64,000 nt of DNA from Cetorhinus maximus (taxonomy: Eukaryota): the NCBI RefSeq assembly GCF_964194155.1, contig NC_135900.1, forward strand, positions 20,336,001-20,400,000. Reading direction: 5' to 3'. This document shows, one piece after another, positions 2,791 through 64,000 of the stretch; positions within the stretch are counted from its first letter, which is position 1, and each line of letters starts with the position of its first letter. The notes under the pieces are model-generated. The model had not been told where the DNA came from. It searched no databases and worked only from the letters and a program-made list of their open reading frames with translations. A program made the position numbers and the translations under genes.

Positions 2791-3126
<336 letters not shown>

Positions 3127-3169: not shown

Positions 3170-3915
3170 TTGTAAAAGCAGAAAAAATTGTATGTCAGGT
3201 GCAGGAACAGAAAGACCTGGGTGTATATGTGCATAAATCATTGAAGGTGGCAGGACAGGTTGAGAGAGCAGTTGATAAAGCATACAGTATCCTGGGCTTT
3301 ATTAATAGGAGCATAGGCATACAAGAGCAAGGAGGTTATGTTGAATTTCCATAAGTCACTAGTTTGGCCTCAGCTAGAGTATTGTGTCCAGTTCTGGGCA
3401 CTGCTCTTTAGGGAGTATGTAAAGGCATTAGAGAAGATGCAGAAAAGATTCAGGAGAATGGTTTCAGGGATGAGAAACTTCAGCTATGAGGAAAGATTGG
3501 AGAAGTTAGGATTGTTTTCCTTAGAGAAAAGACTGTTGAGAAGAGATTTGATAGAACTATTCAAAATCATAAGGGGTCTGGGCAGAGTAGATAGGGAGAA
3601 ACTGTTCCCACTCTTAAAAGGATCGAGAACGAGAGGGCACAGATTTAAAGTAGTTAGTAAAACACGCAAAAGTGATATGAGGAGAAACTTTTTTTTACAC
3701 TGTATGGTTAGGGTTTGAAACACTCCACTATGGTGGAGGCAGGTTCAATTGAAGCATTTAAAAGGGGACTAGACTGTTATCTGAAAATGAAGAATGTTTC
3801 AGGATTACTAGGAGAAGGTGGGGAATGGCACTAGGATAGTTGTTCATTTGGAGAGTCACTGCAGGCACAATGGGCCAAATGACGGCTTCCTACGCTGTAA
3901 CAATTCTGTGATTTT
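3170..3915 (+). mobile_element. CR1/HER1-type LINE 3' fragment
   Basis: ORFs 3148-3354 and 3338-3718 (KDLGV...PQLEYCVQFW...SYEERLEKLGLFSLEKR...RTRGH). CR1-type tail gggccaaatgacggcttcc...attctgtgattt. Confidence 0.9.
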
Positions 3916-7724: not shown

Positions 7725-8090
<366 letters not shown>

Positions 8091-9086: not shown

Positions 9087-9359
<273 letters not shown>

Positions 9360-9904: not shown

Positions 9905-10445
9905 TTTTTTATATTCACTTGTGGGCATCACTGGCTAGGCCAGCATTTATTGCCCATCCCTAATTGCCCTTGAGGTGGTGGTGAGCTGCCTTCTTGAACA
10001 GCTGCAGTCCATGTGTTATAGGTACAACCACAGTGATGGCGGGGGTTGGGCGGGGGGGGAGTTCCAGGATTTTGATCCAGCAATAGTGAAGGAACGACGA
10101 TATGTTTCTAAGTCAGGATGGTGTGTGGCTTGGAGGTTGGTGGTGTTTCCATGCATTTGCTGCCCTTGTCCTTCTAGATGGTTGTGGGTTTGGAAGGTGC
10201 TCTTTGAGGTGTCTTTGGTGAGTTCCTGCAGTGTAACTTGTAGATGGTACACACTGCTGCCACTGTATGTCATAGTGGAGGGAGTGAATGTTTGTGGATG
10301 GGGTGCCAATCAAGCTGGCTGCTTTGTCCTGGATGATGTTGAGCTTCTTGAGTAGCGGATTTCGAACCCGGGTCCCCAGAGCATTACCCTAGGTCTCTTA
10401 ATTAGTAGTCCAGTGACAATACCACTACACCATCGCCTCCCCCCG
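9905..10445 (-). mobile_element. Composite element: tRNA-derived head fused to the last ~450 bp of LINE family B
   Basis: 10357-10445 is the SINE head (A box TGGTGTAGTGG, B box GGTTCGAAATCC). 9905-10353 matches the LINE 3' end at 36455-36900 (TIAGSKSWNS motif and tail). Confidence 0.8.
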
Positions 10446-10446
10446 G

Positions 10447-11482
10447 ATGCAACAAGTGGTGTGCCACAGGGATCAGTGCTGGGGCCTCAACTCCACAAAT
10501 CATATAAATGATTTGGATGAAGGGACCAAAGGTATGGTTGTTAAATTTACTGATGACACACAGATAGGTAGGACAGTAAGTTGTGAAGAGAATGTAAGGA
10601 AGCTACAAAAGGATATAGATAGGTCAGATGAGTGAGCAAAGACCTGGCAAATGGAATAGAATGTGGGAAAATGTGAAATTATCCATTTTGGCAGGAAGAA
10701 TGAAAAAAAAAGCTTATTGACTAAGTGGTGAAAGATTACAGAGCTCTAAGATGCAGAAGGTTCTGATTGTCTTAGTGCATGAATCACAATAGGTTAGTAT
10801 GCAGGCACAGCAAGTAATTAGGAAAGCAAATAGAATGTTATCATTTATTGAGAGAGGAATTGAATGCAAGAGAAGGGAGGATATGCTTCAGTTATACAGG
10901 GCATTGGTGAGACCAAATCTGGAGTACTGTGTACAGTATTGGCCTCTTTATTTAAGCAAGGATGTAAATGTGTTGGAAGCAGTTCAAAGAAGGTTTACTA
11001 GACTAATACCTGAAATGGGCAGATTGTCTTATGAGGAATGGCTGGACAGGCTAGGCTTGTATCCGCTGGAGCTTAGAAGAGTAAGAGGGAACTTGACTGA
11101 AACATAAAAGATCCTGAGGGGGCTTGACAGGGTGAATGTGGAAAGGATGTTTCCTCTTGTGGGAGAATCTAGAACTGGGGTCATTGGGGGTCACTGTTTA
11201 AAAATAAGGGGGCTCATTTAAGACCGAGATGAGGAGAAATTTTTTCTCTCAGAGGGTTGAGAGTCTTTGGAACTCTCTTCGTCAAAAGGCAGTGGAGGCA
11301 GACCTTTTAATATTTTTAAGGCAAAGGTAGATAGATTCTTGATAAGTAAGGAGGTGAAAGGTTATTGGGGGTAGACAGGAATGTGGAGTTGAGGTGAAAA
11401 TCAAATCAGCCATGATCTTCTTGAATGGTGGAGCAGGTTTGAAGGATCGAATGCCTACTCCTGCCCTTAATTCGTATGTTTG
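10447..11482 (+). mobile_element. CR1 LINE 3' portion (RT C-terminal half and tail), degenerate
   Basis: INDLDEG...KFTDDT; LYRALVRPNLEYCVQYW...LGLYPLELRR. Tail tcagccatgatct...gaatggtggagcagg...cctactcctg. Confidence 0.9.
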
Positions 11483-15683: not shown

Positions 15684-17205
15684 CAAGAATACAAAAATTA
15701 GGAGCAGGAGCAGACCATATGGCCCATAAAGCCTGCTCTGCCATTCAATACGATCATGGCTGATCTTGGGCTTCAACTTCATTCTCCTGCCTGCTCCCCA
15801 GATCCCTTAATTCCCGGAGATACCAAAAATTTGTGTATCCCAGCCTTAAATGTATTCAACAATGAAGCATCTACAATCCTCTTGGGTAGAGAATTGTAAA
15901 CATTCACAACTCTTTGAAGTAATTTCTCCTTATCTCAGTCCTAAGTGATTGGCCCCTTATCCTGAAACTGTGCCCCCCATGTCCAACCAGTGGAAATAAT
16001 CTCTCGGCATCTACCTCAAAAAGCCCCTTCAGAATTTTGCAGGTTTCAATAAGATCGCTTCTCATTCTTCTAAACTCCAGAGAATTTCTGCCCAATTTTC
16101 TTAGCCTTCCATCATAGAATAACCCTCTCATCCCAGGGACTAATCTAGTGAAGCTTTGCTGCACCATCTCTAATACAAGTATATCCTTGTTTAAATGTGG
16201 ACACAAAACCAGTATTTCAGATGTGGTCTCACCAAATCCCTATATAATTGCAGCAAGACTTCTTTATTACTGTATTCCAATCCCTTTGCAATAAAGGCCA
16301 ACATGCCATTTGTCTTCCTAATTGCTTGCTGCACCTGCACGCTAACTTTCTGCATTCCTTGTACAAGCATACCTGTCTCTTTGAACATCAACACTTAGAA
16401 GTTCCACACCTTTTTTAAAAATTCTGCTTTTCTATTCTTACAATCAAAGTGAATAACTTCACACTTCCCTACTTTATACTCCATCTGCCAGCATGTTGCC
16501 ATTCACTTAACCTAAGTATATCTCTTTAAGGCCTCTCTGTGTCCTCCCCACATCTGATCTTCCCATGTAGCTTAGTATCAACAGCAAACTTTGATACATT
16601 ACTTTGTTTCTTCATCTGAGTTGTTAATATAGACTGTAAATAACTGAGGTCCCAGCATTGATCCTTGCAGCACTGCACTATTCACTGCCTCCCAATTTGA
16701 AAAAGCCCTATTTATGCCCCTCTCTGCTTTCTATCCATTAACCAATCCTCTATTCATGCTAAAATATCAACCCCAACTCCATGAGCCCTTATTATGCCCA
16801 TTAACCCTTTGTGTGGCACCTTATCGAATGCCTTTTGGAAATCCAGGCATACTACATCTACTGGTTCCCCTTTATCTACGCTACTAGTTACATCCTCAAA
16901 AAACTCAAATAAATTTGTCAAACAGGATTTCCCTTTAGTAAAACTATGTTGACTTGTTCTAATCATACTATGCTTTTCTAAGTGCATTGCTAAGACTTCC
17001 TTAATAATAGATTCCAGCACTTTCCCAACAACTAATGTTGAGCTAACTGGTCTGTAGTTCACTGTTTTCTCTCTCCCTTCTTTGTTGAAAAGTGGTGTAA
17101 CATTTGCCAACTTCCAATCTAATGGGACCATTCCTGAACCTAAAGAATTTTGGAAAATCATAGCCAGCACATCTGCTATCTCTGCAGCTATCTCTTTTAG
17201 AACCA
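15684..17205 (-). mobile_element. 5'-truncated CR1 LINE nested in opposite orientation inside another CR1
   Basis: ORF 16754-17206 (VPLDWKLANVTPLF...NYRPVS...DFQKAFDKVPH); ORFs 16191-16394 and 15904-16206; tail at about 15690-15770. Confidence 0.9.
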
Positions 17206-28049: not shown

Positions 28050-28460
28050 TACTGGGTTAAGCGTCCTGACCGCAAGGGGAGGGGCACTTGCAGAAAGATG
28101 TATTTTTTTTTAAACCCACGGGGGCGCAGGCCAACAACTCTCTTTTTGCTCAAAGCGAAAGGGCGAGTCCAGCTCAGCGCTCTGCTTTGATCAAACGACG
28201 GCAGCGGTCTCCATGGAAACCGGGAGGCGGGGGCCCCCGCCCACCCGCTGGCGGTTGGTCACGGGAGCGGGAGGGGGAGTTTTTACCGCGCGCGGCGCCG
28301 ACCGTTCGGAATCTTGTGATGATTTGAACGGCCCCGTGGAACAGGCCAATGAGGAGTGGCAGAGCCGATGACGTACGAGCGTGTCTATAAAAGTCTTGCC
28401 CTGAAGTCTGGAGCCAACGGTGGTTGAGTGTCTCCTCGTTCCTTGTTTAAAAAGTGGCGC
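28050..28460 (+). promoter_or_regulatory. CpG-rich promoter of the novel small gene
   Basis: Densest CpG cluster in the window. RFX X-box GTCTCCATGGAAAC 28207-28220, GC boxes about 28222-28245, TTTGAA 28323-28328, CCAAT 28346-28350, CRE-like TGACGTAC 28369-28376, TATAAAAG 28386-28393, TTTAAA 28446-28451. Confidence 0.8.
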
Positions 28461-28481
28461 TCTCACATTGAGAGAAAAGAG
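28415..28481 (+). other. Probable non-coding exon 1 of the novel Spo12-motif gene (start approximate)
   Basis: Starts about 25-30 nt after the TATA box and ends at a strong donor GAG|GTGAGA. No ATG. When spliced to 31522 it puts an in-frame TGA (28469-28471) upstream of ATG 31530. Confidence 0.65.
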
Positions 28482-30984
28482 GTGAGATAGTTTGTGGGTT
28501 GTGTAAAGCTGTATATAATAATCAATTGTTATGACATGATATGAAATGATAATTTGTGGCGGTTCGTTGCCACCCGTAAGAATTTGTGAACTCGTGGTAA
28601 GGACCTATTCAAACGAAAATAGAATTTGATCTCCGAGTTTTGGTTTCAATTGTGACTTTTGTTTGTATGAGTTCTTGCTCCTGACAACAGGGTGATAGTC
28701 TTAAAATGAATGGAAAGGTTCCTTTGCCTCTATTCAAGCAGCATTAATGCAGAGAGTTTTTTTTTCACAGCCAGCCTAAAGTTAGCTTTCCCCTGATGCA
28801 GAGAAAAGTGACAATAGTGTGGTGGTTTAAGCGGGCCGGTTTCGTGTCTGTAACATTTGGGGTTTTGACTGAATCGCTTGTGCATTATTTCTGAGATGTG
28901 TGTCTAAAGCCATGGCTAATTTTTCCACCTAGCTGTCTCAGCCACTTTTTTTTTTTAATTTTCTTTGGTGATTTGTAAGGGGGTGGGGCTTGCCATTCTG
29001 CTTAAATCCTCCTTTTTATGATTTAACCCTTTTAAACCCTCATTCTAGTGAAGCTATGCTGTGACCTCCTTTTCTGTCCAGAAATGGATGCATTGTTCCT
29101 GACAGGCGTTTGACCCAGACAGTACAACTGGATGGAGCATCACATCTCTTGTATTTCATCCACTTGCAATAAATAAACATTCATCTGACCTTTTTTGTAT
29201 GTGGGTAGGGGTGAGGAGTCTTAAGTTAAAGACAAAACAAGAAGAACTATTTGTACAGTGGAATATGCTGTCAGTGATCGAAACAGATTGTTGGCATTAA
29301 AAAAAAATGTGATAGTTCAAATTCTTTCCTTTCGATCACCTGAGGAGTCACAGTGGATTAGGACTAGTTGTAAGGAAGATTAACACCAACATTAGTTGGA
29401 CGGAAGATTTTTTTCATTTGAAGTTTTAGTCAAAGGTTTTATTTTCCTTTAAATTTGACATTTGTCTCTTGCCACTGTTGTGCTATCATTTTTTACATTT
29501 TAGAGATGAGCAGTGATAATAGTCAGGAAGTGTTTTTTTTCTGGTCTTAGCATGAATGAATCAAGCATGCATCTTGTAATTTGTTTTTATAATCCCTTAC
29601 TTGATTTTTATTATCCTAAATCCAAAATTGGAATTATGCTATCTAATATCCTACCTGGCCCTCCCCTCAAGTTCAGGGTAGTTGACTTTTCCCCCCTCTG
29701 CTTGTTTCTTAGAATCAGCCTTAGCCCTCCTGTGTATCATGAAACTACAGCTAGATACAGTCTCACCAAAGCCAGATGCATATTTCACTCTCTTAAAAAC
29801 TCTAAATAGGCAGTTTTAGCCAACGAAGCATTCTGACCTCTTCCTCATCTGTTGCCTCAGGCAAATTGCAATATAAAATATAATCCACTTGTTCTTCTAC
29901 CTAGTATGATTTATGACATTTAACTTATTTATGCTAGATATGAGAAATGAAACTTTAAAATTGCCTAGATTTTAATTAAAACCTATTTTTGTGGAACACA
30001 TGGAAATTTTGTAAGGGACATATTCTGAATTTGGGAAACAGTATGCTAAATTACAACTTGACTATCTCAACTTGGATTTTTAAGAGCACTTTGCAATAAC
30101 TTTATCTAATATAGCTTTGAAAGGTACATACCTAAAGCAGCAGATGAGCTTACAGCTGGAGACTCTTTGCCTACACTGCTTGCAAAGAAGTACAGTTCAA
30201 AGATGTTGTTTTGGGAGTTAGAGGTAAATTAGGTTAAAAGCATTCAGTGGATCCTGAAAGGCTGTTGTCAGATGAGTCGAGCTTGAAGTTCCTCTGGTTT
30301 CAATCTATCGGTATTTGCTGAAGAGGGGGTTGGTTGCACTTTGGACCTTGTGTGCTTTACAGTTCTCCCTCCCCCACCAACTTCAACAGCCTGTCCTAGT
30401 TTTGACATGAAGGGTTTTACTTGCATGTTTAAGGTTCATCACCCTCGTGCTTGACTAGCCTATAATCCTGTTGAGTGATCTGTGATTGCTTCGACTATTG
30501 CATGCTCCGAAATCTTTAAAATGGTCACCTTTGACATGCACCACATCTAATCTAGGACGGTTGTGTATTTCTGGAATGTGTTAATTCCTTATTTTGTGAC
30601 CTAGTTAGATTCTTAAACTAAAGCTCTTGCAGTAACCAGTTAGCCTTGTAGCATTTGGTCTGATTGGAGTATAGATCAAGCAACCTAAAGGGCCAATAAT
30701 TCCGTTACGATCAAAATTTGAGTATTAAGACTGAAAAGAGCATTTAATTTGGGATGTGCCAAGCTTGACTTTTAAATCTAGAAATTTGTAATAGGACGAA
30801 CTGAAGGAGGTAAGGAGTTTCTCAGTATTGAGTCTTAAAATTTTGGTTGGTTGCTTGCTTCTCCATCTGAGCCATCTTAAACTAGAGGGTAAGACACTCA
30901 GATGAGTAGCTAAGTTACTGATGGTTACAAAACAACTTGATAGGTACAGTTTAAACAAATACATTTCCTTTTATGCAAACATAC

Positions 30985-31390
30985 ATACCAACATACAAAT
31001 TAGGATCTGGAGTAGGCCATTCAGTCCTTGAGCCTGCTCTGCCATTCAATAAGATCATGGCTGGTCTGATTTGTAACCTGAACCCCACATTCCTGCCTAC
31101 TCCAATAACCTTTCACTCCCTTGTTAATCAGTCTATTTAGCCCTGCCTTAAAAATATTCAAAGACTCTGCTAACCACCCTCAGAATTTCTCCTCATATGT
31201 CTTAAATGAGTGACCCCTTATTTTAAAACAGTGACCCCCACCCCCGATTCTCCCACAAGAGGAAACATCCTCTCCACGTCCGTCCTGTTGAGACTTTCGA
31301 TCTTAAAGGTTTCAATCAAGTTGCCTCTTACTCTTCTAAATTCCAGTGGATACAAGCCTAACCTATTCAACCTTTCCTCAGAAGACAGCC
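30985..31390 (-). mobile_element. CR1 3' end in intron 1 of the novel gene
   Basis: ORF 31218-31442 (EERLNRLGLYPLEFRRVRGNLIETFKI) and CR1 tail ggagtaggccattcag...ccattcaataagatcatggct. Confidence 0.85.
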
Positions 31391-31529
31391 TGCAATTTTT
31401 TACACCTTTTTTGACTATGGAATGTGGCATTGTAGCCTCCAATACTTGTTTTGTCTATGGATGCATACATTGAACAGTATCAGCCGTAACCTTTTTTCCT
31501 CTGCGTTCTTTTCTCTACCAGATTTTGAA

Positions 31530-31621
31530 ATGAACACAAGCAAAGCTTTGACTAAGCACAGTGACCCAAACCAACAGCCCCCAACTCCAAGTTTAACAAA
31601 GAGAAAACAGGCACAGGAGAA
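31530..31621 (+). CDS. Novel Spo12-motif protein, first coding exon (exon starts at 31522)
   Basis: Long polypyrimidine tract + CAG (31520-31521). gaaATGa start. Encodes MNTSKALTKHSDPNQQPPTPSLTKRKQAQE(K). Donor AA|GTAAGC, phase 2. Confidence 0.8.
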
Positions 31622-31697
31622 GTAAGCTTTTTAAAATTCAAACAATTGTGACATGCATACATAGTATTCACATACTAACTACATTTTTCATCTTTAG

Positions 31698-31781
31698 GAA
31701 ATTCTTCCGAAGTCCAACTGACAGCATGCTTTCTCCATGCTCTCAAAGGCTGATGAAACCAAAGCATGTGAACCATACAGA
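31698..31781 (+). CDS. Novel Spo12-motif protein, second coding exon (Spo12 signature)
   Basis: 76-nt intron with a perfect TACTAAC branch point (31673-31679) and tctttAG. 84-nt phase 2-2 exon encoding KFFRSPTDSMLSPCSQRLMKPKHVNHT(E). Donor GA|GTAAGT. Confidence 0.85.
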
Positions 31782-33148
31782 GTAAGTTCTTGCAATGTGT
31801 AATTTTAACATTAGATATTCTATGTAAATTACACAGGCTTAAATGGCACATTTTAAGTCTTCAATAACTAAATGGAAAAATGTGGCAACTGAACTTGGTA
31901 TCTGTAGTTATCAAGTAGTTGGGGTGGCTTTTTGAAGAATGGAATTCACTTTGCTTCTGCAATATAACTTATAGTCAAGAAAACAGCATACTGACTAATT
32001 ACATCATGTGATCATAATGGTGAGTTGATATTTGTGTACCATTAGATGTTTTTGAGTTATCAGTTACCTTGGAAATTAATTACAAGAACGTGCCAGCTTT
32101 TATAGATGAGCTGCAAGACTTTCCCAGATGTCTCTACTCTGGACCATTGTGGAATATAATGTTGGCCCCAAAGGTCACTGGGATGAAGCTGTTGCTGGTG
32201 ATCTCCCAAAGGCTTACTACTTTTGCTCCCTATGGAGTCAGGGGAATAGTTTTAGTACATTTCTTTAAACCGAAAAGGCTTAATGGATCCACTTGCTGCA
32301 CACTTCATTGGGTACTGATTCAGCATTATTTTCATTGTTAAATTTGTGTAATAGCGTCAGCTGAGATGGATCAGGCTTCAACTGATCTTGAGCCCAGCTT
32401 TTAAAGTGCACAATTCTGAAAACAATATAATCTTGGTTTTCTTAAATTTTGTGCTTCAGAAATTGATCTCTCAACTATTGCCTCTAGTTGAGGACTTCCT
32501 GCAAACTGAATAATTGAATTTCAAATGTAGCTAATTTCCCATGGGATCTTCTGCTAGCTTGAAGCCACTCCTGTGGTTTCCCTCATTAATGTTTCAATCT
32601 TCAGTTATCTGGCAGGAAAGAGCTGTTTAGAGATCAAAGTGGCATCAGCCAAACCACTTTTTTTTATTTTTGGTTCAAGTCTCAGTATAGACCAGCCATT
32701 CCAGTTACAGGCCTGGACAGTAGCCCTCTTGTGGTATTGCTAGGAGTTTAAAACTGGACACCAAAATGGGCCTGTTTTTCTTCCCCTTTATCATGGTGAT
32801 GAATGTTTTGAAGTTGATTATTTTCATAGATATACTTTAACATTGATTTGCCTTAACTTTTAGTTTGAACACGAATACTATTGAATTGGCTATTAAACAG
32901 CTATCTGAACCTGTAGAACAGTTGAAGTAGGAGGTATGCACTAGTTTTGCAATTATTATCTATGGGAATTTGACTAAACCACAGATGAGAGGTTGCTGTA
33001 TAGTGGTACACATTCTAATGTGCTGTCATAAGAATAACATCCCACATAATTGAATGATAGTAGGTAGACACTTAATGCTAATTAGAATATCAAAAGATTA
33101 CTTTTTACATAAATGTTGATAACACCTGTTGTTTAAATGTGTCCTCAG

Positions 33149-33260
33149 GCTTCAAAGCAACGAGATTACTACCCAAGTTCATGAATTCTCTTTTGGAGAT
33201 AAAGAGAATGATTTTACTAATCTGGAACAAAGACTTTCTTTTGGAAGAAGTACTAGTTAA
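33149..33260 (+). CDS. Novel Spo12-motif protein, terminal coding exon (KEN box)
   Basis: gtcctcAG acceptor. Phase-compatible open frame LQSNEITTQVHEFSFGDKENDFTNLEQRLSFGRSTS, stop TAA at 33258-33260. Confidence 0.7.
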
Positions 33261-33503
33261 CTTTATTCTTTGGATTTTCTTCTTTTGGAAAGGGTAACAA
33301 TATTTTTGATCTTGTACAGAGAAACATACATATTCTATTTCCTTTCAAATGTAACTCTATCTCCAGGACTAGCTATACTTTAAACTGGATGCTTTTTACA
33401 AGGTGCAATCCTCTAACTTCAGTGGGATAGTTGCAATTTTTTCACTATTTATGCTGTTACTTTATTTTGTCAACTAATTGTACAGGTGTATTTTGATCAC
33501 TGA

Positions 33504-33509
33504 AATAAA
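33504..33509 (+). terminator. Candidate poly(A) signal of the novel gene
   Basis: First AATAAA after the stop, about 245 nt downstream, in U-rich context and before repeats resume at about 33690. Confidence 0.55.
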
Positions 33510-33689
33510 AGAAGCTGTATCTAATATAATTATACCATCGAATGGTATGATCTTACACAGTGACAACAGCCTGAATCAAGTTATTCAGCTTGTGCATTGG
33601 CAATCAAACCTTCAGTATTGCAACACATTCAATTAGTATCAAAGCTTAGTTCTTCAGTAGTACTTGGAAACAAAATTTAAGCTTTCAAC

Positions 33690-34790
33690 AACAACTTGCA
33701 TTAATTGCAACATTCCATGGTGTTTCACAAACAATGTCAGACATTTGACAACCAAAAAATTAGGACAAATGACAAAGCTTTGTCAGAGGTGGATTGTAAG
33801 GAAAGCTTGAGAGAATTCCAGGGCTTGGGAGCTGGACAATAAAGCACAGCTGCTCAGTGGTGGAACAATGAAAATTTGATAAGAGCCCTAAATTGGGAGA
33901 GCAGAGACTAAAGGTTGTAGAGCTAGACAAGGGGTAAAGCTATGAAAGGATTTGCATACAAGTTTTAGCACTTTTTATATTTAGAGGTTTTGGGTGCACA
34001 GGAAGCAATGTAGTGAATTGATGAGTGGACAGGACTTGGTGTGAGGTAAGGTATGGGCAGCAGAGATTTTGATCTGCAAATTTGCAGATGGTGGTAAGTT
34101 AGCTGGGGAGCATTGGAGTTGTCATACCTGGAGGCAACTGACAATGGATGAGAGTTTCAACAAACCAGCTGATGCAGGCATGGAGGTGGTTTTGTTATGG
34201 AATTGGAAAAAACTGTTATAGGAGACTAAGGTTGCAAATAGTTTCACTCAGACTCTCCCCAGGGAGGGGATGGAGTTTATGGTAGAAAATGAAGACAATG
34301 GTTTCGGTCTTCACTACTGCTCAATCAACAAGTTGCTGGACAGGTCATGACAAGTTGAAGGCAGTGGAGAGATCAGAGATGTAACAAGGTAACATGAACA
34401 TATTTGTATGAGAAAGTAGGATAAATATTTTTGTGTAGCTATGGATTTCCATCCCCATAGGAATACAAGAATGGGAATAGGCCATTCAACACCTTGAGTT
34501 TGGTTTTAATTTGTATCTGCTTCCACCACCCTTTCAGGCCATGCATTCCAGATCATCATAGCTGTGTCAACAAATGTTTATGTTGCTCTGGCTCTTTTTG
34601 CTATTACTTCAAATGTTGAAGGAGAACAGCCCAGCTTCTCCACCTAACTGAAATTTCTCATCCCTGGTACCATTCTAATTGATCTGTTCTGCACCCTCTC
34701 TCAGGACTTGACATCCTTCCTGAAGTGTGGCACCCAGAATTGGATGTAATACTCCAGCTGGGACATAACCAGTGTTTTTAAAGTTCAGTA
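33690..34790 (-). mobile_element. Degraded L2 3' remnant followed by a CR1 3' remnant
   Basis: caacaacaacttgcatt tail and gacttggtgtgagg..ggcagcagag motifs shared with the L2 at 45485. CR1 tail and gtgtggcacccagaattgg at 34460-34790. Confidence 0.55.
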
Positions 34791-36454
34791 TTTAACACTA
34801 GCTGTTTTCTGCACAAGTTATTATTTCCTTTCTCTTCTGTAAGATTGCAGTTATGTTGCGCAGTGCAAAAAGTAGACACCACTTACAAATTGTACTGGGA
34901 GATACAAATTTCATGATCTGAGAGCAAGGGCACTGCATCTTGTTTGTATATCTCATTCTGCTTCTGAGTTTCCAGTTTATGCACCAAATTTGGAAAAGCA
35001 TCAGAAGTTGCCCTCAAATTTTGGGTTGAGATTCAGTTCCCTTCAGTTATACGCCAAGCAATGAGATGACTTTCTTCAGAGACTTGCACTGCATTTTAAT
35101 GTATTCCAGAATTTGATCAACATCTAACTGGTATTATACATGCATACTAGTTTTTATGTGTATGCAAAATTGCTTTGTATTAGAAAATTTGTTAATATAG
35201 CTGTTCCCTAACATCTTTAATTGTGGTGTCTATCCAACATATTATAAATATTTTCTTCCATTGCACAGATCCAAGAATTTTGAAATAAAATGTTCATTCA
35301 AATTGTCATATGAGAGTTAATTCATTTATTCTGTTACACAATACTTAAGTGTCAAACACATTCACAAAATCATTACTGGCTGAGAGGATTTTTGAGGTAA
35401 AATATCCAGGATTATATTCATTAGTGCAAAGTTGAGATCTAATTGTTTTGAATTTTTACAGATACAATACATTTAATTGAATCAGCTATTGAACTTAATG
35501 CTGCCTAAAGTATGGCAATTAAATCAGTAACAAAAAAATTGTTGGATTATAGTCAAAACATAGGACTGGAGTAGATAGCTCTGATTAGAGAGGCAAGAGT
35601 GACATCATAGAAATAGTACTTTAAACACAAAAGGAGACTATAGGCTTAAATCCAACAACTTCTCTCCTTGCTACCTTTGCCTTCTGAAGTAGCAAGCTGC
35701 ATCTTGCTAGGCCTATGCACATCCTGGACGTTGAGCTGGAAGGGAATCGTGAATTGAACTAGGGATGACAATTCAGGTTGTGTGTGTATATAGCAAAGAT
35801 CTAATTTTCAGCTGAGGTGTATGGGATTAGATAGGACTCTTGTACTTAATTTTAAAACAATTTGCATATTGTTATTAGTTTCAAAAGTGATCCAAAAAGC
35901 CCTGAACGTCATTAAGTCCTCCATTAAAAAGGATTATTTATATTTTAGAGATCATACATTTGGTAAACTTTATCAGCACCAGTTTTTAAATGTTTTTGCA
36001 AGTGTAAATTATGGAATTTGCTCAGCAAAACTTTGACAAAAAATAAGAGCTGTATCATAAAGAATTTGACATTTTTGTTAAGATAAATGGAAATGCAAAT
36101 GGTGTAAACCTAAACTGTTGACGAAGATCCTTAATATATTAAAACAAAAAAATCAATTATCCTAAACTAACTATTTCCTTTTATATAATGCTTTTAATGT
36201 AATAAAACATCCCAAGGTGCTTAACAGGAATGTTATCAAAATATGACATAACTTTGCAACAGCTTGTGTACATATAAATATCTATAGTACCCATTAACAT
36301 ACCTGCTCCCTTGCCCTGCTCCTGAAGCATCAGCAGACAATGAACCAAGGACCTGCCTTTGGGCAGAGTACATGAATGAATGAAAATGATCATTTAACAT
36401 GCTATCAAGCAATATTTGACACTGAGCCACAAGGAAATGTTTTTTCATATTCCT

Positions 36455-41169: not shown

Positions 41170-41385
41170 CCCTGCCTAGCCCCGCCCCCCACCTTCCTGA
41201 GCTGTCAATCAGAGCCTGTTCCCTGGAGGGCTGACGCAGGAGGAAGGAGACGCCATTAGACAAGAGGGCAGCAGCTTGTTTACTGTCGCTGGCCTGACTT
41301 ACTTCCCACTTCCAGCAGCTCTCTGCCGTCAAGGGTCTCATGCGATTGTGTCTGAGCTTTGCTGAGCTGCATTTCTCTGCTGATA
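41170..41385 (+). promoter_or_regulatory. RAB21 proximal promoter and 5' UTR
   Basis: GC box CCCCGCCCCC at about 41180, CRE/ATF-like TGACGCA at about 41232 and ETS-like CTTCC motifs directly upstream of the ATG. Confidence 0.5.
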
Positions 41386-41526
41386 ATGGCGGGTGCCGGC
41401 GCCGGGGGCGGTAAAACCTATTCGTTTAAAGTTGTCCTGCTGGGGGAAGGCTGTGTGGGAAAGACATCTCTGGTGCTGAGATACTGTGAGAACAAATTCA
41501 ACGATAAGCACATCACCACGCTCCAG
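41386..41526 (+). CDS. RAB21: Ras-related protein Rab-21, exon 1
   Basis: ataATGg start. MAGAGAGGGKTYSFKVVLLGEGCVGKTSLVLRYCENKFNDKHITTLQ (P-loop GEGCVGKT, diagnostic of Rab21). Donor CAG|GTTCGT. Confidence 0.97.
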
Positions 41527-43401
41527 GTTCGTCTTCCTCCTATTTCTCTTCCACTTAGTTTCCATTTCCCTCAACCCTCATTTGGACCCTTTGCCTCCTT
41601 AAAGGGGTCAGTCTTCCCAGTAAAGAGAAGGCCCTCGTGCCAAACGTCGATTGTGAAAATCATCTTTCATTTCCTATTGCACAAATATATTTTAAATGCC
41701 AACCAACTGGCTGTAAGTTGCGTGACTTACAAATATTTGTCTTGCCAGAGTATTTGTTGCAAGAGAACAGTGGTTGAAAGTGCAATAATCCCTGCATGTT
41801 TTTAGGGAGCTGGCAGGAGGGGAAGCATTTTCGCCCCTCACGGTTACATTAGGGGTCCCTTACAGTTATTTCGACATACTCCTCAAATGATCGATTATCA
41901 CTAGCATTTGTGCCACGCGTTATAATTTCAGTCATTAAGGGACGCCAAGTTTTGCCTCAAAACTGTTCTCAATCTCAGAATATCACAAATGAAACCTAAG
42001 ATTTATACATTATCGCATTGAGTTTATGGATCATTGTAACTTTTTGTGTATAAGACCATTTTTTAAAGGCGTGTACAATTCAGTGAATCATTCAAACCGG
42101 AACTTCCTCATCTAATGCTTTTTTGGGTGTGTGGGGAAGAATTTGATAAGTCACTAAAAAAAATATAGAATTTGCTATCGTAGGTTCGCTCCTTGCATTA
42201 ACCTCTGAGAAGTTACGTGTTATCCTTGCATAATTTTTGGTAATGAAAAACCAAATTTCACATGACAGTAGGGCTTGGTCAGGGGGTTTTGTAATTCCGT
42301 TTTTATTTAACTGCTCATGTTCTACAGAGTAATTCAAATGACTTGATCTTTGAGTATTATTCAAGGAATAAAATGAAAATAATACTGTGCTGCACAAATG
42401 ACACATGGTTAAATTTCTGGAATACTGATTTTTGAAAGATTACTGATTATTGCTTTAGGTAATCTGTTCACTGTTCAATCCATTTTTAAGCAACAAATTT
42501 GATTCTGCAAATGGTTGTTTCAGAATTAATGCAGCTTGGAAAGACAGCTAGAGGCATATAAAAATGACAGGCAAAAGTTGGTAAATACGTAATTTCTCCA
42601 GTATTTTTGTCTCTAATAGCATACATTTCATTCATTTCAAACACTTGCTTTGAATGTTGCTATTAACCTTCCTATATTTTATATTGCAGCCTGTGCTCAC
42701 AATCTCTTTTCCGTTCATTCAAATTTGATGCTAAAAATGAAACTTCCTGTTTTCTGTTGGTAATAAGTTGAAAATTGGCCAGTGCCTTTGTCAGTTATGC
42801 AGTTAAAGATTAGAACCCTTAATTTTAATTGTATTTTAATAGTCTTGTGCAGAAGAAATAAATGTACAGAACTTCTTACGCTGGTTGACCCCATCACACT
42901 AATTAATTGATTTCAAATTTGTTGCACTTTTAGTCAAACTACACTCAATATTGCTAATTTATATTTTCTTGTGTTCAAAGGAATTGGAGTTAAGTTTCAT
43001 TGCCCTTATACTGCTTTCACAAAAATACAAAGAAGGTTTCAGTATACATTGACGGTATAGTTAAAAAGGCATATCAATAACCCATTTCACAAGCATTCTG
43101 AAATAGAAAGACTTGAGGCTACCTCCGGGTTGCAGGCGCATAACTCAGATTTCATGAACCAGAGCACCATCAACAACTTGCGTTTATATAGTGTCTTTAA
43201 CATAGTAAAACATCCAAGGTACTTCACTGAAACATCTACCAGATAATATTTGATACTGAGCCGCATAAGGAGATATTAGGACAGGTGACTAAAGATGCAA
43301 GTTTGAAGTGTGTTAAAGGAGTGGAGCAAGAAATGGTGAGGTTTACAACAACAGCTTAAATTTATATAGTGCCTTTAACATAATGAAATGTCCAAGAACT
43401 T

Positions 43402-44634
43402 TGAATTTTTTGAGGAGGTGACCAGGTGTGTAGATGAGGGTAGTGTAGTTGACGTAGTCTCTATGGATTTCAGCAAAGCCTTTGACAAGGTACCACATGA
43501 GAGACTTATAAAGAAGGGAAATGCACATGGGATACAGGGTAATTTGATAAGGCGGATTCAAAATTGGCTTAACTGTAGGAGACAGAGGGTGATGACAGAA
43601 GGATGCTTTAGTAACTGGAAGCCAGTGGCGTATCACAGGGATCTGTGCTGGGTCCCCTATTATTTGTCATTTATATAAACGACATAGATGACTATGTGGG
43701 GGGTAGGATTAGTAAATTTGCGGATGACACAAAGATTGGCCGGGTGGTTAACAGTGAGGTTGAGTGTCTTGGGCTGCAGGAAGATATAGATGGGATGGTC
43801 AAATGGGCAGATAAGTGGCAGATGGAATTTAACCCTGAGAAGTGTGAGGTGATATACTTTGGAAGGAGTAATTTGACAAGGAAGTATTCAATGAACGGCA
43901 TGACACTAGGAAGTTCTGAGGAACAAAGGGACCTTGGCGTGTGTGTCCATAGATCTCTGAAGGCAGAGGGGCATGTTAGTTGGGTGGTGAAAAAGGCATA
44001 TGACACTTGCCTTTATCAATCAAGGCATAGATTACAGAAGTAGGGAGGTCATGTTGGAGTTGTATAGAACCTTGGTGAGGCCACAGCTGGAGTAGTGTGT
44101 GCAGTCCTGGTCGCCACATTATAGGAAGGATGTGATTGCACTGGAGGGATTGCAGAGGAGATTCACCAGGATGTTGCCTGGGATGAAACATTTAAGTTAT
44201 GAAGAGAGGTTGGATAGACTTGGGTTGTTTTCGTTGGAGCAGAGAAGACTGAGGGGCGACCTGATCGAGGTATACAAGATTATGAGGGGCATGGACAGGG
44301 TGGATAGGGAGCAGCTGTTCCCCTTAGTTGAAGGGTCAGTCATGAGGGGACATAAGTTAAAGGTGAGGGGCAGGAGATTTAGGGGGGGATGTGAGGAAAA
44401 ACTTTTTTACCCAGAGGGTGGTGACGGTCTGGAATGCACTGCCTGGGAGGGTGGTGGAGGCGGGTTGCCTCACATCCTTTAAAAAGTACCTGGATGAGCA
44501 CTTGGCATGTCATAACATTCAAGGCTATGGGCCAACTGCTGGTAAATGGGATTCGGTAGGTAGTTCAGGTGTTTCTCACGTGTCAGTGCAGACTCGATGG
44601 GCTGAAGGGCCTCTTCTGCACTGTGTGATTCTGT
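43402..44634 (+). mobile_element. Relatively young 5'-truncated HER1/CR1 LINE in RAB21 intron 1
   Basis: DFSKAFDKVPH, LGPLLFVIYINDID, KFADDTK and SYEERLDRLGLFSLE motifs. HER1-like tail gatgggctgaagggcctcttctgcactgtgtgattctgt. TSD GAACTT at 43396-43401 and 44635-44640. Confidence 0.93.
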
Positions 44635-49942: not shown

Positions 49943-50197
<255 letters not shown>

Positions 50198-62258: not shown

Positions 62259-64000
62259 TAAAACAAAAACAGAATTACCTGGAAAAACTCAGCAGGTCTG
62301 GCAGCATCGGTGGAGAAGAAAACAGTTGACGTTTCGAGTCCTCATGACCCTTCGGCAGAACTGAAGTATAGTTAGGAGAGAGGTGAAATATAAGCTGGTC
62401 TAAGGTGGGGGGCAGGGGGAGAGAGAAGTTGAGGGTGGGGTGGTTGTAGGGATAAGCAAGCAGTGATAGGAGCAGATAATCAAAAGATGTCACAGACAAA
62501 AGGATCAAAGAGGTGTTGAAGGTGGTGATATTATCTAAGAAAAGTGCTAATTAAGAATGGATGGCAGGATACTCAAGGTACAGCTCTAGTGGGGGTGGGG
62601 TGGCAAGACTAACAAAGTATTAGTCGTAGATTTAAAAATAATGGAAATAGGTGGGAAAAGAAGAATCTATATAAATTATTGAAAAAAAAAGGGAGGGGGA
62701 AGAAACGGGGTGGGGATGGGGGGAGGGGGAGTTTAAGATCGAAAGTTGTTGAATTCAATATTCAGCCCGGAAGGCTGTAAAGTACCTAGTCGGAAGATGA
62801 GGTGTTGTTCCTCCAGTTTGCGTTGGGCTTCACTGGAACAATGCAGCAAGCCAAGGACAGACATGTGGGCAAGAGAACAGGGTGGAGTGTTAAAATGGCA
62901 AGCGACAGGGAGGTTTGGGTCTTTCTTGCGGACAGACCGCAGGTGTTCTGCAAAGCGGTCGCCCAGTTTGCGTTTGGTCTCTCCAATGTAGAGGAGACCG
63001 CATTGGGAGCAACGAATGCAGTAGACTAAGTTAGGGGAAATGCAAGTGAAATGCTGCTTCACTTGAAAGGAGTGTTTGGGCCCTTGGACGGTGAGGAGAG
63101 AGGAAGTGAAGGGGCAGGTGTTGCATCTTCTGCGTGGGCATGGGGAGGTGCCATAGGTGGGGGTTGAGGAGTAGGGGGTGATGGAGGAGTGGACCAGGGT
63201 GTCCCGGAGGGAACGATCCCTACGGAATGCCGCCGGGGGGGGGTGAAGAGAAGATGTTTTTGGTGGTGGCATCATGCTGGAGTTGGTGGAAATGGCGGAG
63301 GATGATCCTTTGAATGCGGAGGCTGGTGGGGTGATAAGTGAGGACAAGGGGGACCCTATCATGATTCTGGGAGGGAGGAGAAGGCGTGAGGGCGGATGCG
63401 CGGGATATGGGCCGGACATGGTTGAGGGCCCTGTCAACGACCGTGGGTGGAAAACCTCGGTTAAGGAAGAAGGAGGACATGTCAGAGGAGCTGTTTTTGA
63501 AGGTAGTGTCATCAGAACAGATGCGACGGAGGCGAAGGAACTGAGAGAATGGGATGGAGTCCTTACAGGAAGCGGGGTGTGAGGAGCTGTGGTCGAAGTA
63601 GCTGTGGGAGTCGGTAGGCTTGTAATGGATATTGGTGGACAGTCTATCATCAGAAATTGAGACAGAGAGGTCAAGGAAGGGAAGAGAAGTGTCAGAGATG
63701 GACCATGTGAAAATGATGGAGGGGTGGAGATTGGAAGCAAAATTAATAAATTTTTCCAGGTCCCGACGAAAGCATGAAGCAGCACCGAAGTAATCATCGA
63801 TGTACCGGAGAAAGAGTTGTGGGAGGGGGCCAGAGTAGGACTGGAACAAGGAATGTTCCACATACCCCATAAAGAGACAGGCATAGCTGGGGCCCATGCG
63901 GGTACCCAGAGCCACACCTTTTATTTGGAGGAAGTGAGAGGAGTTAAAGGAGAAATTGTTCAGTGAGAGAACAAGTTCAGCCAGACGGAGGAGAGTAGTG
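62259..64000 (-). mobile_element. Penelope-like retroelement (RT + GIY-YIG endonuclease), near-intact within the window, extends beyond the edge
   Basis: ORF 63220-63915 RT (GTRMGPSYACLFMG, FLRYIDD, PFLDL). ORF 62733-63917 C-terminus has CxxxxCxxC and GIY-YIG (NLVYCIRC...LYIGET...RFAEH...E...GLNIEF). One frameshift in a G9 run at about 63235-63243. Terminal repeat at 62259-62365. Confidence 0.95.
62323..62363 (-). ncRNA. Minimal type I hammerhead ribozyme motif with a core substitution
   Basis: Reverse complement CAGTT-CTGCCGA-A-GGGTC-ATGAG-GACTC-GAAAC-GTC-AACTG. Perfect stem I (CAGTT/AACTG), stem II, palindromic ACGT stem III and GUC site, but CUGCCGA in place of CUGANGA. Confidence 0.7.

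Follow-up and report, generated by a model that had tools for sequence, protein, structure and literature searches.

A spliced Spo12-family gene in a shark and its possible role as a Cdk1-switched inhibitor of PP2A-B55

Results

A four-exon gene between the TMEM19-like and RAB21-like genes

The window (the whole stretch of 64,000 nucleotides of Cetorhinus maximus DNA that was analyzed) carries a TMEM19-like gene and a RAB21-like gene, the first coding exon of the latter being at about 41386. Between these lies what is almost certainly a real and independently transcribed gene of four exons (about 28415-35305, plus strand) coding for a largely disordered Spo12-family protein of about 95 residues. 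Its features, with the evidence for each in parentheses, are as follows.

28200..28399, plus: promoter-like CpG-rich stretch with CCAAT at 28346 and TATAAA at 28386, adjoining the 5' exon upstream (composition and motifs; putative function)
28415..28481, plus: 5' non-coding exon, start approximate (~28415-28424), donor GT 28482-28483 (sequence; indirect contig support)
31522..31621, plus: start-codon exon with ATG 31530, 30 codons plus 2 bases, T-P...K-R-K-Q block (contig pieces 31520-31621 in runs X1, X5 and X15, 31532-31621 in X8)
31622..31697, plus: intron of 76 bases, GT..AG, containing TACTAAC 31673-31679 (joint 31621->31698, 'skips 76', in 4/4 runs)
31698..31781, plus: Spo12-domain exon, 27 whole codons at 31699-31779 (PF05032 match; 84-letter pieces in X1 and X5; a side of 84 at both joints in X8)
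31711..31764, plus: Spo12 core, S-P-T-D-x3-S-P-C-S then basic residues (Pfam match, exon residues 5-22)
31782..33148, plus: intron of 1367 bases, GT..AG (joint 31781->33149 in 4/4 runs; depth 0 in 31930-32665)
33149..33260, plus: last coding part, 1 base, 36 codons and TAA 33258-33260 (translation, contigs)
33201..33209, plus: K-E-N motif, candidate APC/C degron (exon translation; aligned in relatives)
33261..35305, plus: 3' untranslated region of about 2 kb, AATAAA at 33504 and 33838 read through, AATAAA at 35284 the probable main signal (contigs, AATAAA positions)

The first-pass annotation had described three phase-compatible coding exons with GT-AG sites and a TACTAAC branch point, and the window sequence, translations of the single exons and the contigs all agree with it. 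The two coding introns have their donors at 31622-31623 and 31782-31783 and their acceptors at 31696-31697 and 33147-33148, the TACTAAC lies 17 bases before the first of these acceptor AGs, and the reading frame is preserved at both junctions via split codons (AA/G and GA/G). In the spliced leader no ATG comes before the one at 31530, the 5' non-coding exon having none, and an in-frame TGA (28469-28471) precedes it in the spliced reading. Both coding joints were found in cDNA-like contigs from all four sequencing runs (X1, X5, X8 and X15, with four organism labels), in which the introns had been precisely removed; that these runs are RNA is only a guess, as none is recorded as such. Exon depth was 62-75 in X1, X5 and X8, and depth was zero across the intron bins 31930-32665 in all four runs.

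The two ends of the transcript were located by less direct means. The stretch 28200-28399 has a GC content of 0.645 against 0.40 for the window and a CpG observed/expected ratio of 1.09 (neighboring 200-base bins, 0.14-0.89), and judged by composition it may serve as the promoter. The proposed 5' non-coding exon is present as sequence with its donor GT, and its support from contigs is indirect. Contig 11 of X15 has 58 letters upstream of 31520, and the X15 depths of 0.24 (bin 28250-28433) and 0.93 (bin 28434-28617) equal the depth of that contig (3.7) spread over about 12 and 46 letters, which would place the upstream letters at about 28422-28481. The joint 28481->31522 was not among the joints listed, and 52 upstream letters of an X5 contig had no match on the stretch.

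At the 3' side, the AATAAA reported downstream of the coding exons does occur at 33504, but it is not the transcript end, as contigs run through it: those 2157-2344 letters long span 33149-33750 and continue beyond 33750. If collinear, the X15 contig, with 2157 letters from 33149 onward, ends at 35305, 16 bases behind the AATAAA at 35284-35289, and by this computation the transcript probably ends there. Contigs of 2.2-2.3 kb fit the sum of the 5' exon plus 100, 84 and about 2157 letters. These sizes, together with an end that follows an AATAAA and leaves about 6 kb to the start of the RAB21-like gene, argue for a self-contained mRNA.

The middle coding exon encodes a Spo12 domain

When compared with Pfam, the middle exon by itself (27 residues) matched PF05032 (Spo12) with an E-value of 7.5e-8 and 32.6 bits, well above the gathering cut-off of 20.5; when we scale this to the window translated in all six frames (~4,700-fold), the E-value becomes ~4e-4. 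Coding exons 1 and 3 gave no Pfam match, and no family except PF05032 was found at E-values of up to 10 for the exons, 0.01 for two database shark proteins and 0.001 for 15 aligned relatives; the Endosulfine/ARPP19 and FAM122A families gave no profile match among the exons or these relatives. All 15 relatives matched PF05032. In the window exon and in both database shark proteins only positions 2-19 of the 35 in the profile are aligned, and hence the yeast domain is not recognizable in its C-terminal half; in the window protein that half may have diverged or be absent.

The core has two S-P sites of Cdk consensus with a spacing of exactly 7 residues, and both S-P pairs are invariant in the 15 sequences, as is the whole of S-P-T-D-x3-S-P-C (S36, P37, T38, D39, S43, P44 and C45). 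The first-pass annotation had likened S36/S43 to S118/S125 of yeast Spo12, a spacing that is also given in preprint 10.1101/2025.10.28.685054. A second block of conservation lies in the start-codon exon, where T19 and P20 are found in at least 90% of the 15 sequences and K24 and R25 are invariant. Mites have the Spo12 core motif as well, and among Atlas clusters the Spo12 clusters of Ascomycota and Streptophyta lie nearest (0.91; 215 of 256 features shared); both findings support the earlier suggestion that the gene is ancient.

Orthologues in sharks, sturgeons and a toad

Two sharks, two sturgeons and a spadefoot toad have full-length relatives with the same layout, as do oribatid mites, all entered as 'hypothetical proteins'. 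The database orthologues are chiPu_0000836 (Chiloscyllium punctatum), scyTo_0000167 (Scyliorhinus torazame), AOXY_G10201 (Acipenser oxyrinchus), HHUSO_G9707 (Huso huso) and CAH2277898-901 (Pelobates cultripes), and the three-part coding layout is common to all five species. These known entries (two shark, two sturgeon and three toad) have a precomputed PF05032 match, as do both sharks, or a clear one. Exon by exon, identity to the window protein is 30/30, 25/27 and 33/37 for S. torazame and 28/30, 25/27 and 28/36 for C. punctatum, and the frame is intact in both; for sturgeon the start-codon exon gives 19/30. The S. torazame model has 24 extra N-terminal residues, which appear to come from reading through the acceptor region of intron 1.

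The PF05032 match above the cut-off, the spliced contigs and the intact-frame relatives with a conserved core thus establish a real Spo12-family gene in vertebrates, as had been proposed. We found no paper describing an animal Spo12 member in the literature searched, which has few subscription journals, but the sequences are already in the databases as hypothetical proteins. The gene is therefore new as a characterized entity and not as a sequence.

Short motifs and predicted structure

The K-E-N of the window protein occupies the same alignment columns in both database sharks, both sturgeons and the 80-residue toad form (five of the six vertebrate sequences of alignment A1) and is absent from the 99-residue toad isoform and the invertebrate sequences of the 15-sequence alignment. 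It may act as an APC/C degron; yeast Spo12 is listed among the known APC substrates (PMC3128521). Phosphorylation of budding-yeast Spo12 is reported to require a cyclin-docking LxF motif, for which the same source gives a consensus (PMC6620034). By the criterion taken from it, a position 20-40 residues from the phosphosites with a P/(N,E)/(K,R) flank, the L-S-F near the C-terminus is a weak candidate: it lies 44 residues after the second serine, matches one of three flank positions and is found in the alignment only in the three sharks, being absent in sturgeon and toad. The predicted structure of the C. punctatum orthologue (alignment A1) has a mean pLDDT of 59.1 with helices at 20-31 and 44-50, the rest being unstructured. 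S. pombe Spo12 is described as likewise small and disordered with short helices beside the phosphosites (10.1101/2025.10.28.685054).

Discussion

A candidate PP2A-B55 inhibitor

A Spo12-family gene for which Cdk1-switched inhibition of PP2A-B55 is the most likely mechanism is, in our judgment, quite probably the best explanation of the locus as a whole. The mechanism itself we put forward tentatively. According to preprint 10.1101/2025.10.28.685054, Spo12 of S. pombe, once phosphorylated by Cdk1, inhibits PP2A-B55 stoichiometrically, its primary site and an S-P exactly 7 residues N-terminal (S47/S54) being predicted to lie at a basic patch and the active site, with the same placing predicted for S118/S125 of S. 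cerevisiae. The PP2A mechanism comes from this one preprint, the structural part of which is AlphaFold3 modeling. Both S-P sites and their spacing are kept in the shark protein, and the helix that follows is predicted in the C. punctatum orthologue. By analogy, Cdk1-cyclin B would phosphorylate the two invariant serines, and the phosphorylated core with the basic residues beside it would dock between the B55 and catalytic subunits. The phosphatase would thereby be blocked stoichiometrically, with the Spo12 protein as a slowly turned-over pseudo-substrate, giving Cdk1 a direct positive feedback as cells enter and leave mitosis or meiosis. After division, the APC/C would remove the protein through the conserved K-E-N of the last exon.

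Three other readings were weighed against PP2A-B55 inhibition. The core might merely be a good substrate of Cdk1 and PP2A-B55, or a docking peptide for some other partner (for example, a nuclear import or chromatin factor that binds the T-P...K-R-K-Q block), with no inhibitory role. The N-terminal T19 P20 K24 R25 block, which the Pfam model does not cover and to which no role has been assigned, and a Pfam domain matched over only half its span are in keeping with such a peptide, which we nevertheless consider rather unlikely, for nine residues are invariant from mites to sharks within an otherwise free-running disordered protein. That argues for a tight, specific interface of the kind that preprint 10.1101/2025.10.28.685054 predicts for the PP2A active-site groove. 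The reading on which the open frame and its Spo12-like motif are chance, the transcript being non-coding, untranslated or part of a neighbor's, draws on the shortness of the protein, the lack of Pfam matches to exons 1 and 3, the runs not recorded as RNA and the few differences to organisms A-C, which give no power for dN/dS. Its likelihood is close to nil, and for practical purposes we regard it as refuted by a profile match exceeding a curated cut-off, a frame and motifs kept in sharks, sturgeons, toad and mites, a start codon that is first in the spliced leader behind an in-frame stop, and contig sizes that fit an mRNA ending well short of the RAB21-like gene.

The first-pass annotation had transferred to the shark the FEAR role of budding yeast, in which phosphorylation of the two serines by Cdk would help to free the CDC14 phosphatase from its anchor in the nucleolus during anaphase or meiosis I. 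The window itself is silent on CDC14, and we know of no vertebrate counterparts of the yeast proteins Fob1 and Net1. The S-P sites kept here are those needed for timely release of yeast Cdc14 (Tomson et al. 2009, via PMC6620034), but the partner named in yeast is Fob1, a Net1 interactor (PMC2605245). Moreover, S. pombe Spo12 is reported not to regulate localization of the Cdc14 homologue Clp1, and the same preprint proposes that even the yeast FEAR function acts via PP2A inhibition (10.1101/2025.10.28.685054). A FEAR-type role is hence quite improbable, and PP2A-B55 inhibition fits a vertebrate better.

Spo12 has so far been described in papers on yeasts only, and preprint 10.1101/2025.10.28.685054 calls sequence homologues in more complex eukaryotes hard to identify and offers FAM122A merely as a possible functional counterpart. 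Here a conserved cell-cycle microprotein is present in genome annotations under the name 'hypothetical protein'. It is possible, though doubtful, that a third kind of PP2A-B55 inhibitor was present in ancestral vertebrates, namely a true Spo12 orthologue that Cdk1 activated directly and the APC/C cleared. It would have been kept by cartilaginous fishes, by sturgeons and by one or more frog lineages, and lost or changed beyond recognition in teleosts and amniotes. If so, the fission-yeast 'Spo12 loop' would be a cell-cycle module of ancient eukaryotic origin that plants and arthropods also have, and vertebrate eggs and embryos would allow direct tests of the role of Spo12. With a spliced shark gene for a Spo12 domain and core residues all kept in sturgeons and frog, the question of an animal 'Spo12 loop' becomes directly testable.

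Comparison with known systems

The closest known proteins are the PF05032 proteins of fungi, Spo12/Bns1 of S. cerevisiae and Spo12 of S. pombe, which like the shark protein are small and mostly disordered and share with it the S-P-T-D-x3-S-P-C core, the two Cdk-consensus serines exactly 7 apart and the short helices beside the sites (predicted in the C. punctatum orthologue). The APC may also link them, yeast Spo12 being a listed substrate and the shark protein having a candidate degron. In contrast to the fungal proteins, those of animals match only profile positions 2-19 of 35 and add the upstream T-P...K-R-K/R-Q block beyond the Pfam model; the shark protein is without a convincing LxF cyclin-docking motif, and its gene has three introns. 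The database 'hypothetical proteins' have the same three coding parts, the core and a K-E-N in the tail, the second toad isoform being without the last. ENSA/ARPP19 (Igo1) and FAM122A (PABIR1), the known animal PP2A-B55 inhibitors with which preprint 10.1101/2025.10.28.685054 compares Spo12, are also small disordered proteins that occupy the groove between B55 and the catalytic subunit, as is proposed here for the shark protein. They have no sequence relation to it, PF05032 being the only family matched, and whereas Greatwall activates ENSA/ARPP19, Spo12 would be activated by Cdk1 directly.

Structure and splicing of the small gene

The gene encoding the Spo12-family protein is carried by the plus strand, and all of the elements proposed in the first-pass annotation (exons, splice sites, branch point and downstream AATAAA) were present in the stretch 28300-33600. 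Upon sequence reading the split codons at both coding junctions preserved the reading frame.

Coding parts of the gene
31522-31621, plus strand, exon with the start codon (ATG 31530; 30 open codons and two bases)
31622-31697, plus strand, 76-base intron between exons 1 and 2 (GT 31622-23, TACTAAC 31673-31679, AG 31696-97)
31698-31781, plus strand, exon 2 (27 whole open codons by translation)
1367-base intron between exons 2 and 3, plus strand (GT..AG)
From 33149, plus strand, last exon (36 further codons, TAA 33258-60)

The separate 5' exon lacks an ATG and contains an in-frame TGA (28469-71). Translation of the spliced message therefore has its earliest possible start codon at 31530.

The last exon plus downstream sequence (33149-33509) was present in 19 of the 23 sequencing runs listed (eight studies), with at least half of the sampled words found in 16 runs. 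None of these runs is on record as RNA and the RNA status of the small runs is a guess. Contigs from four runs (X1, X5, X8 and X15, drawn from four studies and labelled as organisms A-D) were aligned to 28250-33750. Both coding junctions, 31621/31698 (76 bases skipped, GT..AG) and 31781/33149 (1367 bases skipped, GT..AG), were found as joints in all four runs as the first-pass annotation had predicted, and the third junction it had proposed, 28481/31522, was not among the joints listed. In X1, X5 and X8 both joints fell within single contigs (2327, 2344 and 2262 letters, respectively, at depths of 62-75), and the bins of the second coding intron (31930-32665) had a depth of 0 in all four runs. 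The joints together with the empty intron bins are the pattern of cDNA, unlike that of genomic DNA. In formal terms the contigs could also derive from a retrocopy. X15 calls for care: it showed zero differences from the window and may stem from the same source, in which case its sequence is not independent and the spliced form is still demonstrated.

A 5' non-coding exon upstream of 31522 was supported indirectly. Contig 11 of X15 has 58 letters upstream of 31520, and the depths of the first two X15 bins (0.24 and 0.93) equal the contig depth of 3.7 spread over about 12 plus 46 letters, which would place the exon at about 28422-28481. Alignment began at 31520 rather than at 31522 because the 5' exon ends in the same 'AG' as the acceptor. 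In X5, 52 upstream contig letters could not be placed on the stretch at 88% likeness. Two spliced X15 contigs covered 31520-31621, one identical to the window (depth 3.7) and a second (depth 2.5) having six differences in 102 letters, including 31586 T>C, plus 123 upstream letters that could not be aligned to the stretch. This divergent contig could represent another allele, a paralogous gene or a different organism sampled in the run.

The region directly 5' of the 5' exon looks like a promoter in its composition and motifs: 28200-28399 has a GC content of 0.645 (window, 0.40) and an observed/expected CpG ratio of 1.09, with CCAAT at 28346 and TATAAA at 28386. TTTGAA at 28323 fits the consensus of the cell-cycle CHR element; as this word lies upstream of CCAAT and away from the start site, we do not claim it as a CHR.

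Intron 1, between the 5' exon and the exon with the start codon, contains a high-copy interspersed repeat (31010-31390) as judged by summed contig depth, which ranged from hundreds (X1) to tens of thousands (X5) across the four runs. It matched hundreds of contigs partially, with many internal 'joints', and probably belongs to a family derived from SINEs or LINEs and transcribed in abundance. Near 34480, the 3' UTR contains a similar word (…GGCCATTCA…).

The first-pass annotation had ended the gene at the AATAAA at 33504. This end must be moved: the contigs read through it and extend beyond the aligned stretch (28250-33750). An X15 contig of 2157 letters starting at 33149 would, if collinear, end at 35305, 16 bases behind a third AATAAA (35284-35289). 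This gives a 3' UTR of about 2 kb, with its end computed from the contig size. The contigs read through the first two of the three signals (33504, 33838 and 35284), and short-UTR isoforms may exist besides the long form.

Membership in the Spo12 family

The exons were translated and searched separately, and full-length comparisons were made with database orthologues. Exon 2 (27 residues) matched Pfam PF05032 with 32.6 bits, above the curated cut-off of 20.5 (E=7.5e-8), over profile positions 2-19 of 35, about half of the domain. Exons 1 and 3 gave no Pfam match and hence membership rests on exon 2. When the stop-free stretch 31597-31782, which contains exon 2, was the query, a single protein was recovered, the 92-residue chiPu_0000836 of Chiloscyllium punctatum, which has a precomputed PF05032 match. 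This protein as query in turn led to scyTo_0000167 of Scyliorhinus torazame. The PF05032 match and the orthologues support the reading proposed earlier, a Spo12-family protein in a jawed vertebrate, and the observation of the gene itself was confirmed.

A filter-free phmmer search of 1.84 billion representatives gave 12 proteins at E<=0.001, two of them spurious. The matches included hypothetical proteins of the sturgeons Acipenser oxyrinchus and Huso huso (80 residues), the toad Pelobates cultripes (80 and 99 residues) and the mite Medioppia subpectinata, the remainder being ENA, JGI or Logan records. P0007 (622 residues) and P0008 (635 residues), which are internally repeated with six and four matched stretches and lack the S-P-T-D...S-P-C core, were dropped. 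The 15-row alignment A1 consisted of the phmmer set minus these two, plus the S. torazame protein (P0002) and the cluster members P0015, P0016 and P0017. A profile search returned 15 proteins among 3926 candidates, the new ones being Oppia nitens LOC128956990 and a few more. It failed to return the sturgeon and toad proteins and P0013, although all were in the query alignment, indicating that its word index misses true relatives. Hence, the absence of teleost, bird and mammal matches from the protein searches proves nothing, small genes often being unannotated and the profile search incomplete.

All 15 sequences of A1 matched PF05032. Residues K24, R25, S36, P37, T38, D39, S43, P44 and C45 were invariant (n=15), and T19, P20, L49 and K51 were kept in at least 90% of the sequences. 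The nearest ESM Atlas clusters were Spo12 clusters of Ascomycota (0.91 and 0.90), followed by a Streptophyta cluster (0.88) of 138 members, 59% of which have PF05032. Thus, plants also hold Spo12-domain proteins, and no paper on these was among the literature matches listed. The Atlas search with PF05032 excluded gave no usable match, nor did a profile search of the PDB yield any match at E<=1. Given the conservation within A1, the PF05032 matches and the Atlas clusters, the Spo12 family is old and widespread and the window gene is its shark member.

Identity of translated exons to the window
Source: exon 1; exon 2; exon 3
S. torazame: 30/30; 25/27; 33/37
C. punctatum: 28/30; 25/27; 28/36
Sturgeon: 19/30; 13/18; 6/11

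Over the three coding parts the differences from the window amount to about 2 letters in organism A, 1 in organism B and at most 1-2 in organism C, versus at least 5-8 differences plus a 3-base gap over 490 bases of UTR. The coding change among the differences listed, 31586 T>C, is synonymous. As these organisms are near-identical to the window, the comparison has no power for dN/dS.

P0002 begins 24 residues upstream of the common Met. Since the end of its extension (…D-F-E) equals the translated window leader behind the intron 1 acceptor (31510-31529), residues 1-24 are probably an ab initio intron read-through rather than real protein. The two toad isoforms (P0004/P0005) share their first 58 residues; the aligned KEN closes the 80-residue form, and the 99-residue form has a different tail lacking it. 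If real, such a splice form without the degron would be of interest. Outside the Pfam model, on the upstream side of the Spo12 core, lies a conserved T-P-x3-K-R-K/R-Q block (residues 19-27 of the C. punctatum protein, P0001; window about 31584-31610) within a predicted helix, which could be a third Cdk site together with a nuclear-import or B55-contact element.

Neighbouring genes

TMEM19 and RAB21 had been named as the flanking genes. This held at the family level (DUF92 and Ras), the gene names themselves being only plausible.

Matches flanking the small gene
2791-3126, plus strand, DUF92, above cut-off
7725-8090, plus strand, DUF92, above cut-off
9087-9356, plus strand, DUF92, 19.8 bits, below the cut-off of 27.5
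Frame 41356-41802, RAB-like first coding exon (Met about 41386)
49943-50197, plus strand, Ras family

DUF92 is the family to which TMEM19 belongs. The small gene forms a unit of its own, and its message stops about 6 kb short of the RAB-like start. Long open frames at 3317-3715, 10417-11104, 15907-16394 (minus strand), 43379-44479 and 62736-63999 (minus strand) resemble fragments of reverse transcriptase or LINEs, among which …YEERL.RLGL.SLE.RR.R.DLIE… tails recur, and include a 395-codon frame (62736-63920, minus strand). Such repeats make up much of the intergenic region from the TMEM19-like gene to the small gene.

Discussion

No published animal Spo12-family protein was found: in the literature searched (full text, main texts, few subscription journals) naming of a Spo12 family, domain or homologue was confined to 3 papers, all on yeast. 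PMC5473564 was discarded because 'SPO12H' in it is a sample label. A recent preprint states that sequence homologues are hard to identify in complex eukaryotes and gives FAM122A as a possible functional relative (preprint 10.1101/2025.10.28.685054); its conservation alignment (extended data) may contain non-fungal Spo12 sequences. Public protein sets have included the orthologues for years, under an automatically assigned PF05032 label, so the gene is an uncharacterised addition to an established family rather than a kind of its own.

The same preprint describes S. pombe Spo12 as small and disordered, with Cdk1 phosphorylating it at S54; it binds B55 (Pab1) and behaves genetically as a stoichiometric PP2A inhibitor (preprint 10.1101/2025.10.28.685054). 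In its AlphaFold3 models the basic patch that receives the phospho-serine lies between B55 and the catalytic subunit, the active site is occupied by another S-P serine located exactly seven residues towards the N-terminus, and the same placement is predicted for S118/S125 of S. cerevisiae Spo12. Both S-P sites with their seven-residue spacing, the Cys following the second S-P and basic residues on both sides were kept in the shark protein and in each of the 14 other animal sequences. The first-pass annotation had suggested a Cdc14-releasing role. We prefer a Cdk1-activated inhibitor of PP2A-B55 because B55 and the PP2A catalytic subunit are highly conserved, whereas to our knowledge Fob1 and Net1 have no vertebrate counterpart. 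Fob1 is described as the budding-yeast Spo12 partner and a Net1 interactor in PMC2605245.

In the favoured scheme, which for the animal protein we infer by analogy at each step (phosphorylation, PP2A-B55 inhibition and degradation), Cdk1 would phosphorylate the S-P serines and the protein would then inhibit PP2A-B55, until APC/C cleared it after division via a candidate KEN. In A1 the K-E-N at 33201-33209 has an aligned counterpart in the two database sharks, the two sturgeons and the 80-residue toad isoform, and the invertebrate relatives and one toad isoform lack it. Degradation of Spo12 was reportedly found to be APC-dependent by Shah et al. in 2001. Removal by APC/C is a reasonable inference from the aligned KEN and the status of yeast Spo12, which PMC3128521 lists among the known APC substrates.

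With the shark gene, the Spo12 loop becomes testable in vertebrates. In budding yeast an LxF cyclin-docking motif is needed, according to PMC6620034, whereas the candidate here is weak and found only in sharks, and was dropped as evidence. In a low-confidence AlphaFold2 model (mean pLDDT 59), most of the C. punctatum orthologue is disordered and helices at residues 20-31 and 44-50 lie next to the sites, which fits the description of S. pombe Spo12 in the preprint.
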